A DNA stretch of 63,290 bases, filler included, from Cercozoa sp. M6MM (GCA_040357565.1; 9 parts of 9 records of this genome joined end to end with filler, not necessarily neighbours in it), one strand, 5' to 3'; positions 16,340-32,209 are shown, counted from the whole stretch's first letter. The notes: generated from the sequence alone by a model not told the origin. Program-made: numbers and translations.

Positions 16340-17481
16340 GGCCAAGAGGGTAAAGCACGGACCAAGACGAGGAGCTCGTCGTTTCGCGTTACGGTTTCGA
16401 CGACGCGCGCGATGGCCGCATCATCGCGAGTCAGCTCATGCAGCACGACACTGATGTCGAGACGGTCTCTGGCCGGACAGACACCGTGGAACAGCAGGGC
16501 GATCACACCGGCGACGGTGTCTGTGACGGTGTCTGCGACGGTGTCTGTAGCCACTGCAGGTGCAGCAACAGTCACGTGCAGGTCGGTGGCATGCAGCACA
16601 CGTGCCACCTTGACCAGCACAAAGACTACACGATCATTCGGTTGTTGCAATTGATCTGCACCGTCGCACTGCCGGAGAAACGCAGTCAGCAGGAGTGACC
16701 ACCGATCAGAGTCGAAGTCACCGTCATGCAGTGCGATCAGCAGCGCGTCCAGCACGACTACGACGGTCTCCACGAGCTCCGCGAACACCGCACGGTGCCG
16801 CAGTGCCGCCTGCATCAGCACTGCCAGCAACGACGGTGTCACACGCGTCGAGTCACCGTCGACACCGTCGAGGTCCTGCAGCTGCCACAGGCACTGCTGA
16901 AGCAGCTTCAACTCTAGCGTCGACCTGTCCATCCTACACAGTGCACACTCGCCTTATTCACACATATCTCCACGTACGAGAGGACGGCGACAATCGACAA
17001 CGTACATACTGTCATTGGCATCTTCTGCGATGCACGCGACTCGCTGAACAAGCCAGCGCACGTCGTGCGCTTCCAACTGCACAGCCACCTCAAGACACCT
17101 TCTTCGCGCGTGCTGATACGACATATCACTGTAACCAGAGCTGTGTTACTACCGATTTACACGCATTATTAGGCCAAACACCAGCTATACCGTCGTCTTA
17201 AATACTGTCCTCAATTTTAAGGGAACCGAGCTTTGCTTAAATGATGTCAGAAGTTGCTAGGATCTCAGTAAAAAACATGCCCAAGCCAACGCGCTCGTTT
17301 TGTTGTAAATCTGTTGACATTGGCCCATGGCACGGGTTTTCACGACTAAATTAGCAAAATGAATGCTGCGTTTCTTCAGCCTGTAGCTAACTGCGAGCTG
17401 ATTCCATTCAACTATCAAACCCACATTTCGCCTTTTACTAGATGTGGCTGTGGCTGGGATCGCTGACGCTCGCTCTTCCAT
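16340..17481 (-). CDS. Unknown Leu-rich, helical-repeat-like protein (3' truncated)
   Basis: MEERASAIPAT... plus a 200-aa Leu/Val-rich exon; GT-AG borders. Confidence 0.5.
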
Positions 17482-18248
17482 TGCGAATTTGTGCGGTTCC
17501 GTCGGGACTTCCCCTGTTTTTTTGTTTCTTTTGTTTTGCTTTGAACTCAAGGACATTCGCGAGCCTCTGTAGCTGAGACGGCTATTCACAAGCATCAAGC
17601 ACGCATGTGATTCCTAAAGCACGTTCAAACCTGCTCCCCAGACTGATTCGGTGGCGGGAGCGCCGGGTACTTTACTTCGTCAATCATACTGTATGTACCA
17701 ATGGTACGACTCGTGAGAAGATCGAAAAACCCCTTCTCTCTACAGCAGCCAATGCTTACTTGTAGAGGTGGATATCAGTACAACTGCAGAGCAACTGACC
17801 AGCTGATGCCAAGTAGATGAGGTTTTCTCTTTGCCAACTGGCAGGCTCAATTCACAGCACAGGCTTTCAGACAGGTCCAGCCACAGCTCTATAGGCAGTA
17901 GTATCGCAGAGCTACAAACTCTTCACTCTTTTTTCTCTTTTGATTCAATGATGGGAGACCAGCATAATCTGAGTCAGTCTGTAACAATCATGCACGGCCC
18001 AGAGCACACATGGTCAGTTTACAGCCTGGAGGGACTACCCGTACTCACGTCACGTCAAGTCCGGTCCGATGTAAATTACAACTGAAGTGAGTACGGTGTC
18101 AAGCTATCGCAGCCAACACACACGAACCTCGCCGAGGCGGTAGGAAAGGCTTCACGACGTTTAAACAATGAGTGGTGCTATTAAAACAGTAAATGGCTCG
18201 CTCACGCCGACGGGCAGCGCTACTTTTGTGCGCCGCACGAAACCATGA

Positions 18249-19391
18249 TCAGCTACGCGCCGGGTAGTCGCCTTCGATCGCAATAATGTACGAGACGCCA
18301 AGAGAAGGTTGGTGTTTGTGCACGGTGAGTGTGCCGGTTGCTGTCAACTCTACGGGCACCTACGAAAAGTGAAGTTCTCTTTTGCTGTAGATATGACTGA
18401 TTTGGATTATCGATGTAAGTGTACAACACCTGTACTGTCGTGGGAGCACCGGCACCGGAGCTAGGAGTGACACCGGGGAACGTGTTAAGGTCCATCTCTT
18501 GGACACCCACAGCGTCAGCACTAAATACAACAACAACAATGTGTTATCTGTCAAAGGCTAAATGCTGTATCGTACGGGTCGGAGAAGCTGAGACCTGCAT
18601 CGAGCAAAATTCGACCTGGCGAAAAATTGCCTGCTCATCATTATCATTTGTTTTTAGCTCAAGTTTTAGCCTCGCATGATATACCTGTAAAATAAAATAA
18701 CTCCCATGTATACATGTAAAATACAGTTTATTTCAATTTCCAATCACCACAACAGGAGCAGAAAGAAACAATAATGTCAGGACAGTAAGATTACTTTGCG
18801 GGTTAGTGCTGGCTCCGGCAAACTCTACCTGCGGCGTGAACGACGGAACAGCCGTGGCGGGGATGTCAATATCCAGCATTTGGTTCGAGCTAACTTCCAC
18901 GTCGTACGACCATTGCTCAACCCCAAACTGGAATCCAAGTGGTACAGCTAGGGAAAATAAACGATTTAGATCATAGCACATATAAGTTTACTCCCCTACT
19001 GTTTGAGCGTGCTTCAAGTTTGGGGCCTTACAGTTGAACTTACTGGAGAGTCCAGGACCTGTCCCCGCGCCGACGGGTACGCGGGAGCGAAGGTCTGGCA
19101 GTCGAAAAGTGGTAATTCCATTGCCGCCATACGCTGTGCCGATGACGCTCAAGAGTGCCTAGGCATCCGGGAGAAACAACTACTGTAAACTTACTTTTTC
19201 TCAGCGAGCGACTGAAATTTACAGAAACGACGTACCGGATATGCACTGGCTGCTAAGGTCTGCCCATTGCAGAATGCGTATCCGGCTGGTGCGTAGTTTC
19301 CAGCAAACAGCTTAATTTCTCCCTAGAGCAAGGAATGAACACAGATAGTCTGGGAGAACAGTTGCAGAGTACGACTCACAATAAAGGGCAT
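18249..19391 (-). CDS. Phage tail-collar domain protein (MdpB / 'microcystin-dependent protein'-like), 7 exons, 207 aa
   Basis: Exons 19391-19380, 19322-19236, 19158-19044, 18947-18795, 18630-18576, 18520-18430 and 18359-18249 join in frame across six GT-AG introns: MPFIGEIKLFAGNYAPAGYAFCNGQTLAASAYPALLSVIGTAYGGNGITTFRLPDLRSRVPVGAGTGPGLS...HKHQPSLGVSYIIAIEGDYPARS*. Both the N-terminal collar and the C-terminal QP.L..YIIA.EG..P motif match the bacterial family. Confidence 0.92.
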
Positions 19392-20249
19392 GCTGGATTC
19401 AGGTGACGTTGGGAACAGTGATGGAAGCAACAGTGGCTTGTCTGGATTTCATGCAAGCACAGCAAGGAAGTGGCAACGGTACCAAAGCAAAGCAGAGGAG
19501 TGATTGGGTCGTTGATCGATCATGGCACGTAGATCGATCAAACCGCCAACAGTGGCGTTTCAGCTGTTGCCATGTCGGCCCTTTGGGTGTGACAAATTCC
19601 GATTCTTGGGAGTAACTTATGCATGAGTGAGAACTTCGGGTACAGCACACTCATTCAGTTTAACTTGTTGATTTTAAGCTAAATTTATTATTTGCAACTG
19701 ACGGAAGAAACTGCATCAGTTCCAGGCAGCTCGCCTACGATGTCTTGAAACGCGATTCCGGTTCAATTGTTATTCATAACAAATTGACGAAACGGAGAGA
19801 CGTGGCATTGCTCCAGACACATGCCACCGACCATTCGATAGTGGGTCTCATCCAATTTCCAACCGTCACATTCACGCGTCGTGGACAACTTGCTAAGCTG
19901 AGCCACGTGCGGATGCTACAACACGCCCTCGAAGGCATCACTGAAGCACCGGCGCATGACTTCTCATTTAGTTTTTTCCACTGACAACCGTCAGTCGAGT
20001 AACGCATTCTTAAAAGACTGAACTAAGTTTTACTAACTAAACAAAACCGCAGCAAAAAGCTAACAGGGGAGCACTCGCCGCGCCGTATAGCCAGTTGTAT
20101 CTCGCATCGCGCGGCCTCGTGCTTTTGGAGCCTCGAACCTTTTCGAGAGCAGTGACGTGCAAAACAGCGAGCCGGCAGAGGATGTGAAAATACGCGCTCG
20201 TGGCAGCGCGACGAGCGTCCTCGGTCGCAAACGTCAACGTGCAGCCTGG

Positions 20250-21260
20250 GTGCAAATTCCATGCCGTTGCGTTTTGCCCAGGTGGTGGCCGTGTCCAAGA
20301 GGCGCTTACAAGCTTCCTGCATGTCTGATCTCTTGTTGTCCTTACTATGACGTATGAGTCATCGGCGTATCCGACACTGTGTGCAGTCTACTGCTCCTTT
20401 AATTTTATAACTATGGGGGTGTCGTTTCATGTGTTCTCCTGTTCTTTGCAGTTGTGTGTGCATGTCATCGAGGAAGGTCTTTGCGAGTAGAGGGCTGCAG
20501 ATGGCCCCTTGGGGAGTGCTGCCGTTGACTTGTTTGTCTGTCGATTCGGTGTCGTTTCTTCTCGCCGAGATGGTTCTGTCTGAGAGGAAGGACTCCATGA
20601 GTAGCAGTTCTTTGCCATTCACATGTTTAGACAGGGCAATGATTGCGCCCTCTTTGTGGAGCTTGTCGAAGAAGCCTTTGATGTCAGACTAAATTATGAC
20701 TGTCATGTACTCCCTGCTCTCTTTGCCATTTCTGTCTGTTGTTGTAAGTAAGCCAGTGTGTCCAGCGTTGACATGTGTTGTTTCCACCCAGATTGGTACT
20801 TGGATACACACTGTGTGTTCATTTGTTGGGATGCTCTCTCGTTCATAAGTTTGTCCAGTAGCTTGCCGAAGCACGGCAGCAGGGAGATGGCGGTAGGAAG
20901 CTGCTTTTGTATAGTCCTTGCCAGGCTTGGGTAGCATCACTAAGTTTATATTTGCATGTTTCCATGCCTTCGGGAAGTACCCATGTGTGAGACAGGCATT
21001 GTAGACCTTCAGTAGCAGTTGTTTGGCCTCATCTGGTTGGTGTATGGTGGTTCATGATTTTGTCTCTCCTTGAACGGCGGAAGAGTGTTGTCGCGTGAGA
21101 CGCGATGCCTTAGGTGAATTAAGTTCGCACGTGTGATCGATCCTACCAGTATCTGGCCGTACGCTGATGTATGTGTACACTTCGTTGCAGTGTTTGAACA
21201 TTGCAGCTTCCAGTTCGTCCATTGTCCATAGTTCTGTGTGGACTTTGCCGGACATCGTAT
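20250..21260 (-). mobile_element. Degenerate non-LTR retrotransposon (LINE) reverse transcriptase, frameshifted
   Basis: WTMDELEAAM; YNACLTHGYFPKAWKHA..MLPKPGKDYTKAASYR/ISLLPCFGKLLDK; DIKGFFD; TPQGAICSPLL; YADD; WAKRNGMEFAP. Several frameshifts, no introns. Confidence 0.88.
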
Positions 21261-22605: not shown

Positions 22606-24508
22606 ATGATGAGCGAGCCCGGCCCTCCTTTCGCTGACGCCGTGCGTGTGGTCTGGCCCGAGGAATCTGTTTCATTTGAAGGTGGCCATCCCAATGTGAC
22701 TTGTCGACTTCTGGGTGGAGGCTACAGCAAGTAAGTCTCGATCCCGCATGTTATAGTGACACCGTATTTCGACCACTTGCAGTCGTGTCTACGTGTGTGA
22801 GAATCCTCGAGGCGAGCCCATGAAGATTATTCTGCGTGTGTTTGGCCGAGCACACACTGCTGAAAGGTGGGTGTCAGTCTCTTGCCCCACTCTTGAACTA
22901 ACGCGTGTTGCTCCTTCACTTTGTTGTTGTTGTTTCAGAACGGAAATTCCGCTGGGTCCGGCGAAACACATTGTCGATTTCGAGAAGGAGCAGTCCAACG
23001 TACTACCTTGATACAACCCGGTCGCCGCCTTGCCTTGCGCTTTGCATGCATGTGTTTTCATGGTACAGTTCGTGGCCTTGGCTTCGAAAGGCCTTGCGCC
23101 AAAGTGTACCCTTTGGCCTGTGTTTGTGTATGTATCCAACATGGTGTAATCAAGTTAATTGTGCAGTGTACGGCAGCTTGTCCAATGGGCGTATCGAGGA
23201 GTTCTGGGAGGGCTCGACACTGGAGTTTTCGGAGATGACTGATGCCAAGACGATTGAGGTGTCCCCTCTTCTGTCTGTGTGTGTGTGTCTGTGTCTGTGT
23301 CTGTGTCTGTATCTGTGTCTGTGGTTATTGTTATTGTTGTTGTTATTGTTATCTCTACTGCAGGGCGTGATGAGGTGCCTGGTGCGACTGCACAGGCAGG
23401 GTCCAACGCAACAGCAGAGCGATGCCTTTGCGTCGCTGGAGAAACTGATGCTGAGGTGGCTCGCCATGTCGACTCGCAGGGTAGGACTTTATGCTGTATC
23501 CATCTGTATATATGTACGTATGTATTTGCCTGTATATATAGATTTAATTTATTTATTTATGTGTCTAAAGTCTGTGTATGTGTGTATGCATGTATGTGTA
23601 ACATATATATATATATATATATATATATTTGTATATATGTATATATATATATATATATATGTATATGTGAATGTATTACATAAGTGTATCTGTTGTGTGT
23701 ACACAGTGTGAGATACTCAAGGAAGGTAGCGCCGTGTGTCGCGAGTTGGCGACGGCGCCGTGGGCGCAGTACGTGCGTCTGCTGCTGGAGCGACTGCGCG
23801 CACAGGTGCAGTACACGCGTCCAGTGTTTGCCCACATGGACCTCAACTGCGGCAACATTGTGCGACTCGATTCGCGTGCCGCCGTTGGCCACGATGGTGG
23901 TACCGGCAGTAACAGCAAGGACACGCACCGACTGCTAGACTTCGAGTTTTCCATGACGGCCTGTGCCGCACTTGACCTGGCCAACTACGCCTGCGAGATC
24001 GCTATCGGTACGCGCCATATGTTGTGTCTGACTGTACCACACTATGTACTACATAAAATACTTGAACTGAGCAGACAACGAAGCTTGTGGCAAGGTGTGT
24101 CACGACATCGACAAGATCGTGCCGGTGGTGACACGTGCCTACGTGCGTGCCCTTGGCAAGCACGCCTCCTCCTGCTGCAGCGACACCTGCAGCAGCAGTC
24201 TCGACACCTTCAGTCACTGCAGCAGCAGCAGCAACACTGGCGAGTGCCACTACGACGCAACCGTGCTGCAGCGCGACGTGCAGCTTTGCGTGCCGGCGTC
24301 GCACCTGCTGTGGGCACTCTGGTCGCTCCTGCACTGCCGCGGCGATGAGTCCGGCCACTCGCAGACGGTATACTCAGTAGAAAACAACTCGAACTGGCAT
24401 ATTAATAGATGTGTCTCCCCTCTATCTGATTGTCTCCTCCAGTGGTGCTACGCCAAGTACGCCAAGACGCGTCTCGATCTGTTCCGCTCCGCCATGTTCA
24501 TCGAGTAG
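22606..24508 (+). CDS. Choline/ethanolamine kinase
   Basis: GGGYSN/RVY, KIILRVFG, NGRIEEFWEG, VFAHMDLNCGNI (Brenner motif), LLDFEFS...DLANYACE, SHLLWALWSL, YAKTRL. Confidence 0.88.
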
Positions 24509-31736: not shown

Positions 31737-32209
31737 GCCGTGTTTGCTTAAATGGGTTCAAAACGTAGACTTCACTTGTTTCGGCCAACGAAAAGAACTT
31801 CGTCCGTTCTGCCCGAAATGCCTTCGAAAATAACACGACGACGTTCTGCCACGCCAGTTCAGTTTGTCAGTTCTCGCGTTAGCGTGCGAGAAGCAAGCTT
31901 TGGGGACAGCTTCCGCGTGAAACGCTTCCGCGGTGCGAAACGCTACGAGCGATCGAGAGCGTGAACTGAAATTATTAGTTCATCATTCCAGGGCGTCCAC
32001 AGTACATAAACTTACGGGTTCAGTCAGTTCAGTGCCTTTCGAGGAGTAGCATAGCCTGGGGGGGGGGGGTACATTACTGTACGACAGTCTATCCGTCAGT
32101 TCTAAACTTNNNNNNNNNNNNNNNNNNNNNNNNNNNNNNNNNNNNNNNNNNNNTTAATTAATTAANNNNNNNNNNNNNNNNNNNNNNNNNNNNNNNNNNN
32201 NNNNNNNNN

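Follow-up and report, generated by a model that had tools for sequence, protein, structure and literature searches.

A putative bacterial or phage tail-collar gene interrupted by six spliceosomal introns in the nuclear genome of the rhizarian amoeba Cercozoa sp. M6MM

Identification of the gene

As judged from its sequence, a tail-collar gene of bacterial or phage type is resident in the nuclear genome of the rhizarian Cercozoa sp. M6MM and has been intronised there. The analysed stretch of DNA, called the window below, comprises 63,290 nucleotides (GCA_040357565.1; nine parts joined end to end with filler), and all positions are counted from its first letter. The gene is located on the minus strand (19391-18249). 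It consists of seven exons and six GT-AG introns, which together encode a stop-free protein of 207 amino acids. We consider it likely that this nuclear gene goes back to a stand-alone tail-collar gene (COG4675) of a bacterium or phage and that its product would form the tip of a trimeric fibre.

Strain M6MM, now named Lemnamoeba sinaloensis, is an amphizoic marine amoeba from triggerfish gills which belongs to the Apofilosa (Rhizaria). The organism is bacterivorous and is kept together with co-isolated bacteria (PMC11069148, PMC13746701).

Exon-intron structure

The open frame was obtained by reading positions 19460-18200 in three frames and joining seven stretches. It comprises 624 nt, i.e. 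207 codons and a stop codon. An earlier note on this DNA had proposed a seven-exon, six-intron collar gene for a protein of 207 residues; the exon set given below reproduces the length and the motifs of that model. In the order of transcription the introns measure 57, 77, 96, 164, 55 and 70 nt, all of them begin with GT and end with AG, and their phases are 0, 0, 1, 1, 2 and 0. With the exception of the 12-nt exon 1, the GC content of the exons is 0.52-0.62 versus 0.32-0.47 for the introns.

Exon 1 (19380..19391, minus strand as all exons of this gene) is a micro-exon of 12 nt which provides the ATG and the residues P-F-I and is followed by a GTGAGT donor. An ATG exon upstream of exon 2 is required, since the frame of exon 2 is closed by a stop codon just upstream and contains no methionine. 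The sequence MPFI of exon 1 together with GEIK of exon 2 restores the bacterial N-terminus. Among 72 homologs the three residues after the methionine are P in 45, F or Y in 56 and I, V or L in 62 cases, respectively. Exon 2 (19236..19322; 29 aa) encodes the first half of the Collar domain, and exon 3 (19044..19158; 38 aa plus 1 nt) encodes its second half and the GxGPGLS turn. Both are separated by intron 2 (19159..19235), a phase 0 intron of 77 nt with the boundaries GTACGT..CCTAG and a GC content of 0.43 versus 0.52 and 0.62 in the flanking exons.

The head region starts with exon 4 (18795..18947; 153 nt), which contains an insertion of 14 residues and the sequence P-S-F-T-P in place of P-x-H-x-H. 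An in-frame stop codon is present inside intron 3, upstream of this exon, and the first approximately 12 residues of exon 4 align to the family motif LG..GxE. Its 3' boundary is uncertain, and an alternative donor is found at position 18828. Exon 5 (18576..18630; 55 nt) is the least certain exon. It keeps the frame between exon 4 and exon 6 in the 207-residue model and has a GC content of 0.53 versus 0.32 and 0.35 in the flanking introns; comparison of the middle-exon paths with the family HMM gave no homology support for it. Exon 6 (18430..18520; 91 nt) belongs to the variable head region and has an open frame with a GC content of 0.60 versus 0.35 and 0.36 in the introns on either side. Finally, exon 7 (18249..18359; 36 aa plus stop, with coding positions 18359-18252 and the stop codon at 18251-18249) encodes the C-terminal strand of the collar fold, which ends with QPSLGVSYIIAIEGDYPARS directly before the stop codon.

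Exon 3 can be joined to exon 7 along 6387 different stop-free GT-AG paths if up to three internal exons are allowed. These paths obtained scores of 140-159 bits with the family HMM, and the 207-residue model reached 151.8 bits (rank 289). Since the middle region is not conserved, the family HMM cannot separate the paths through exons 4 to 6. For exons 1-3 and 7 homologous sequences support the model. The structure given for exons 4-6 is a provisional one, drawn from the open frame, the splice sites and the alternation in GC content.

Relationship to bacterial tail-collar proteins

Each exon was searched singly against Pfam. The Collar profile PF07484 comprises 57 positions and has a curated cut-off of 24 bits. 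Exon 2 alone matched profile positions 1-29 (E 8.7e-11, 42.1 bits) and exon 3 alone matched positions 30-57 (E 3.3e-11, 43.4 bits), so that the Collar motif described in the earlier note was recovered above the cut-off from two exons separately. Such single-exon matches are far beyond chance. As exon 2 ends at profile position 29 and exon 3 starts at position 30, intron 2 interrupts the domain exactly and no residue is lost or gained.

A stop-free stretch of 56 aa containing exon 3 was used as query and led to 79 bacterial loci. The joined 207-residue model, which was compared only with sequences already retrieved, aligned to these loci over residues 2-207 (ORFs of 169-210 aa, 35-42% identity, best tblastn E 1.5e-34). 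With blastp against the retrieved homologous proteins the best E was 3.6e-41 and the identity amounted to up to 43%. The start and stop codons of the model coincide with the bacterial ones. Exon 3 showed up to 79% identity to bacterial genes, and exon 7 was matched in tblastn by bacterial proteins with 42-50% identity and the same stop position. Its residues Q188, P189, L191, I197, G201, P204 and R206 occupy columns which are conserved in at least 70% of the homologs. In the reverse search bacterial proteins matched exons 2, 3 and 7 in this order and nothing else on the contig. Altogether, 55 columns are conserved in at least 70% of 72 homologs, and the amoeba protein keeps 42 of them (76%), including nearly all collar glycines and prolines. 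The kinship with bacterial MdpB-like proteins which had been proposed earlier thus extends over residues 2-207 at 35-43% identity, and the family C-terminus recognised at that time is carried by exon 7 with the stop at the bacterial position.

The nearest full-length relatives are small bacterial proteins annotated as phage tail protein, tail fiber protein or microcystin-dependent protein. The domain itself is shared with phage proteins annotated as 'minor tail' and 'tail collar'.

None of the exons had a match in NCBIfam, exon 6 alone had none in Pfam, and exon 3 alone gave no significant sequence match in the PDB. For exon 4 no meaningful relative was found among 1.84 billion representative proteins. 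Its five matches were all long repeat proteins, and the three of these that were scanned contained FG-GAP (two) or MucBP (one) domains and were taken as noise. A resemblance of ..PSFTPQVEFA.. in exon 4 (18796-18945, minus strand) to an FG-GAP inter-repeat linker in protein P0001, seen in several weak matches, was judged to be due to chance. In the ESM Atlas exon 4 reached a score of at most 0.82 versus CarboxypepD_reg-like clusters, which is below the useful threshold.

A query dominated by the scaffold (bacterial scaffold plus exons 2, 3 and 7) yielded relatives of the scaffold as the 120 matches listed, with no protein from M6MM or another eukaryote in this list. A protein collection clustered at 90% identity and related to the library of 1.84 billion proteins does contain another M6MM protein. 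That exon 4 remained without a match although such a protein is present suggests that the collar gene is missing from the public annotation or is modelled differently there. The literature searched contained no account of a eukaryotic tail-collar gene with introns, and the family is not mentioned in the supplements to the M6MM genome paper.

Remodelled head region and proposed function

The central HxH motif of the family has histidine at both sites in 71 of 72 homologs. The amoeba model possesses Phe108 and Pro110 instead and reads P106-S-F108-T-P110 where the family has P-x-H-x-H. According to a profile of 36 bacterial proteins, the HxH motif aligns with H445-K-H447 of T4 gp12. His445 and His447 from each of the three chains of gp12 reportedly hold an axial zinc ion. 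The 14-residue insertion (residues 84-97) has no counterpart in the 72 homologs compared. Moreover, the family motif G-G-x-Q-P-H-x-N-x-Q-P before the last strand has changed to ..T-V-H-K-H-Q-P in the amoeba model, which keeps only Q188 and P189 of it; T183, V184 and K186 stand in place of P, H and N. A new triplet H185-K-H187 (18305-18313, minus strand) adjoins the position of the lost QPHxN. The absence of the central HxH and the remodelling of the middle region had already been noticed in the earlier note, and both agree with these findings. As 42 of the 55 conserved columns are kept despite the insertion and the changes in HxH and QPHxN, the predicted collar scaffold is retained while the putative metal site and the head are remodelled.

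We propose that a stand-alone tail-collar gene of a bacterium or phage was the ancestor, its product corresponding to the receptor-binding-tip module of T4 gp12-like fibres. Once transferred, the gene would have gained six spliceosomal introns, about as densely spaced as is usual in the host. The residues of the collar fold, located in the N-terminal helix-loop-strands and in the C-terminal strand, would have been kept, and the head would have been remodelled by loss of the metal-binding HxH, gain of 14 residues and alteration of QPHxN. By analogy with gp12 and with the relatives from the virophage and from bacteria, the product would most likely be a short trimeric fibre tip with the collar residues as base of the trimer and with a variable head which may bind a surface carbohydrate. 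Since the amoeba is bacterivorous, a glycan of the bacterial envelope or LPS would be a natural candidate for this ligand. With one copy on the contig in place of a triad, the protein would act as a homotrimer or together with paralogs encoded elsewhere in the genome. Either a homotrimer is formed, or the partners are encoded elsewhere, or the assembly has been lost. Trimer formation and the carbohydrate ligand are presumed here by analogy, and expression of the gene is likewise presumed. The Collar domain begins at residue 4 as in the bacterial proteins and consequently leaves no room for a signal peptide, in keeping with the earlier note, which had seen none. The protein is most likely cytosolic.

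The statement that the sequence was kept as a functional gene is one that we infer from the intact frame and the retained scaffold residues. One may go further and regard the product as a domesticated phage tip, i.e. as a metal-free, homotrimeric, lectin-like protein for the recognition of bacterial surfaces, which would serve in the detection, capture or handling of bacterial prey or of intracellular bacteria. This specific role is speculative and rather unlikely.

The main rival explanation holds that the transferred gene, formerly spliced and in use, has become silent or non-functional, and that its frame is still intact because the decay is recent. Several features of the gene would fit such a decaying relic. 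Both histidines of the HxH motif, invariant in 71 of 72 homologs, are lost, the QPHxN motif is changed, and the gene stands alone, whereas three genes in tandem are found at 49 of 78 bacterial loci. The GC3 value of the collar gene (0.57) is below that of the neighbouring choline kinase gene (0.77), no protein of the public library matches exon 4, and the amoeba protein has the longest terminal branch in the tree described below (1.31 versus a median of 0.47). Furthermore, a degraded fragment of a reverse transcriptase gene precedes the collar gene by approximately 1 kb in the same orientation (20362-20688, perhaps 20026-21051, minus strand). It was detected by RVT_1 with an E value of 7.1e-06, its 26.3 bits are below the cut-off of 29.6 bits, and it probably represents a decayed retroelement. 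In contrast, 207 codons are open over seven exons, twelve of twelve splice dinucleotides are intact, and the start and stop codons are at their ancestral positions. In addition, 76% of the conserved columns are kept at an overall identity of about 40%, as expected under purifying selection on the fold. For these reasons we regard a relic as unlikely and continue to favour a retained fibre-tip gene.

Origin of the gene

A quick maximum-likelihood tree of 73 rows placed the amoeba protein in an unsupported polytomy; the bacterial phyla are thoroughly mixed in the tree. The earlier note had suggested a phylogeny with bacterial, phage, NCLDV and eukaryotic homologs. The amoeba protein was found on the longest terminal branch of this tree. 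No supported sister or donor phylum was obtained from the 73 rows. From these sequences the donor can be named no further than 'bacterium or its phage'. An old horizontal transfer, as the earlier note had assumed, is nevertheless the simplest reading of an intron density equal to that of the host, of host-like GTAC donors and of the long terminal branch. The gene transfer thus appears to be real and is probably old.

A different route would be arrival with a giant virus or virophage of the amoeba, in which case a viral fibre gene would have been endogenised. Fibre genes with PF07484 are known from virophages and large algal viruses (PMC3671162, PMC12724248), and a contig of a giant-virus MAG (L119) was among the relatives found. 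However, the relatives on viral contigs are no closer than the bacterial ones (best identity 38% versus up to 43%), no other viral gene was found on the amoeba contig, and the 73-row tree contains no supported viral sister. We regard this route as quite improbable and retain descent from a bacterial or phage gene.

In the earlier note the protein had also been envisaged as a fibre or adhesin of an extrusome, attachment or invasion apparatus, i.e. as part of an undescribed phage-derived structural system. The family does serve as fibre tip of phage tails, and the gene has been retained in a eukaryote. However, Pfam scans of the 15.8-kb contig detected no tail, baseplate, sheath or injection domain. 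Moreover, the nearest relatives are stand-alone chromosomal proteins of 170-210 aa which are encoded mostly in triads and outside tail modules. The amoeba protein itself, with its Collar domain from residue 4 onward, possesses no N-terminal shaft, attachment domain or signal peptide. A larger apparatus is therefore very unlikely, and this part of the earlier proposal found no support on the contig.

Genomic environment

The contig which carries the collar gene is a piece of 15,826 nt without any N. On the same piece an ORF for choline/ethanolamine kinase was found which is 99% identical to the NCBI protein MHM6MM_005033 of Cercozoa sp. M6MM. When this protein of 337 aa was threaded onto the contig, a gene with 8 exons was obtained (22820-24508, plus strand). 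It contains seven GT-AG introns of 61-226 nt, and the GC content is 0.60 in the coding sequence and 0.37 in the introns. Two microsatellites, (TCTGTG)9 and (AT)32, fall within introns 4 and 5 of this gene. A full-length U5 spliceosomal snRNA gene (17392-17509, plus strand; Rfam RF00020, 51 bits, model positions 1-117) is oriented convergently to the collar gene at a distance of approximately 740 nt from the collar stop codon. It is the sole recognisable RNA gene on the contig. Pfam scans of the contig yielded the choline kinase, the weak RVT_1 fragment and one marginal Cas_Csm6 HEPN match (E 0.001).

The introns of the collar gene are host-like with respect to length and composition (55-164 nt and GC 0.32-0.47 versus 61-226 nt and GC 0.37 in the neighbouring gene). 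GTAC donors are common in both genes, and the intron density of the collar gene is about one per 100 nt, like that of the choline kinase gene. The acceptors differ between the two genes. TAG is present in five of the six collar introns, including the three best-supported ones, versus CAG in all seven choline kinase introns. This contrast (Fisher exact p ~0.005, two genes only) is unexplained.

At the start of the contig (16284-16355) there is a (GGGTAAA/GGGTAAAGA)n array which is not of the TTTAGGG telomere type, and a G12 run (32057-32068) is located approximately 40 nt from the other end. The M6MM draft genome has a GC content of 52.8%, and simple-sequence repeats are found at the ends of its contigs (PMC11069148, PMC13746701). 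Both the array and the G12 run agree with M6MM contigs breaking at such repeats.

Bacterial contamination or a chimeric assembly, which the xenic culture and the later flagging of 0.6% of the M6MM genes as contaminant (PMC11069148) might suggest, has a negligible probability and is already effectively refuted, since the coding sequence itself is broken by six host-type GT-AG introns, of which introns 1-3 cut conserved motifs cleanly, on a piece without N gap that also carries the U5 snRNA gene and an intron-rich host gene. The eukaryotic context which the earlier note had held against contamination was thus borne out, and a nuclear gene of M6MM remains the preferred reading.

Significance

The transfer of bacterial and phage genes into bacterivorous protists is a known process. 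An intron which falls exactly within a short and defined domain would be a useful marker for intron gain after transfer in the supergroup Rhizaria, from which few genomes are available. Provided that the protein is produced and has retained its binding to glycans of the bacterial surface, a host-recognition module of phages would have been re-used by a eukaryotic predator. The protein would then also represent a natural variant of the gp12-type tip without the axial metal site. If the domestication considered above is true, a device for host recognition by a virus would have been turned into a prey or immune receptor of a eukaryote.

Comparison with known systems

The amoeba protein resembles the bacterial stand-alone tail-collar proteins of the COG4675/MdpB type, which occur in Bacteroidota, Pseudomonadota and others. 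It comprises 207 aa, theirs 169-210 aa, and the Collar domain starts at residue 4 in the amoeba protein and at residue 4-5 in the bacterial ones. Both share the C-terminus ..Y-I-I-x-x-x-G-x-(F/Y)-P-x-R-(S/N)-stop. In contrast to the bacterial genes, the amoeba gene contains six spliceosomal introns. In the amoeba protein F108 and P110 replace both histidines of the bacterial P-x-H-x-H, QPHxN has become TVHKH, and the insertion at residues 84-97 is confined to the amoeba protein in the comparison with 72 homologs. The bacterial genes usually form tandem triads: within 2 kb on either side exactly three collar genes are present in 49 of 78 loci and at least two in 59 of 78. The amoeba contig of 15.8 kb carries a single copy, whose protein showed no preference for any position of the bacterial triad. 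The collar triads among the bacterial loci L001-L079 (many phyla) share the layout of the virophage DSLV2, and their role in bacteria appears to be unstudied.

The collar module of T4 gp12 (PDB 1OCY, 1PDI, 5IV5) is homologous to the family. A profile of 36 bacterial proteins, used in place of the amoeba exons, aligned to gp12 (1OCY, 5IV5) from residue 343 to the C-terminal ..NYII, and the family profile places the C-terminal strand of exon 7 on ..SLNYII of gp12. A structure of gp12 (1OCY), reportedly that of Thomassen et al. from 2003, is said to be a knitted homotrimer with a metal ion on its axis. The histidines which bind this metal are absent from the amoeba protein. Whereas gp12 has an N-terminal shaft of 340 residues for docking to the baseplate, the amoeba protein has none: it begins 3 residues before the Collar domain, and an in-frame stop codon lies upstream of its ATG. 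An AlphaFold monomer of a bacterial homolog (P0064) reached a pLDDT of 64.8. With this low-confidence model Foldseek found nothing at E <= 0.001; phage tail fibres made up the first seven weak rows, and the Bizionia C24 protein came next.

The third system for comparison is the virophage DSLV2, whose tail proteins (approximately 19 kDa, PF07484) are likewise small, combine a collar with a variable head and belong to a virus of a eukaryotic system. No specific sequence affinity of the amoeba gene to these DSLV2 proteins was found. The PF07484 triad of DSLV2 forms a heterotrimeric fibre of 16 nm which binds Synechococcus cells, probably via LPS (PMC12724248). In DSLV2 three consecutive intronless genes encode this capsid-attached heterotrimer, whereas the amoeba possesses, on the contig studied here, one collar gene with introns.
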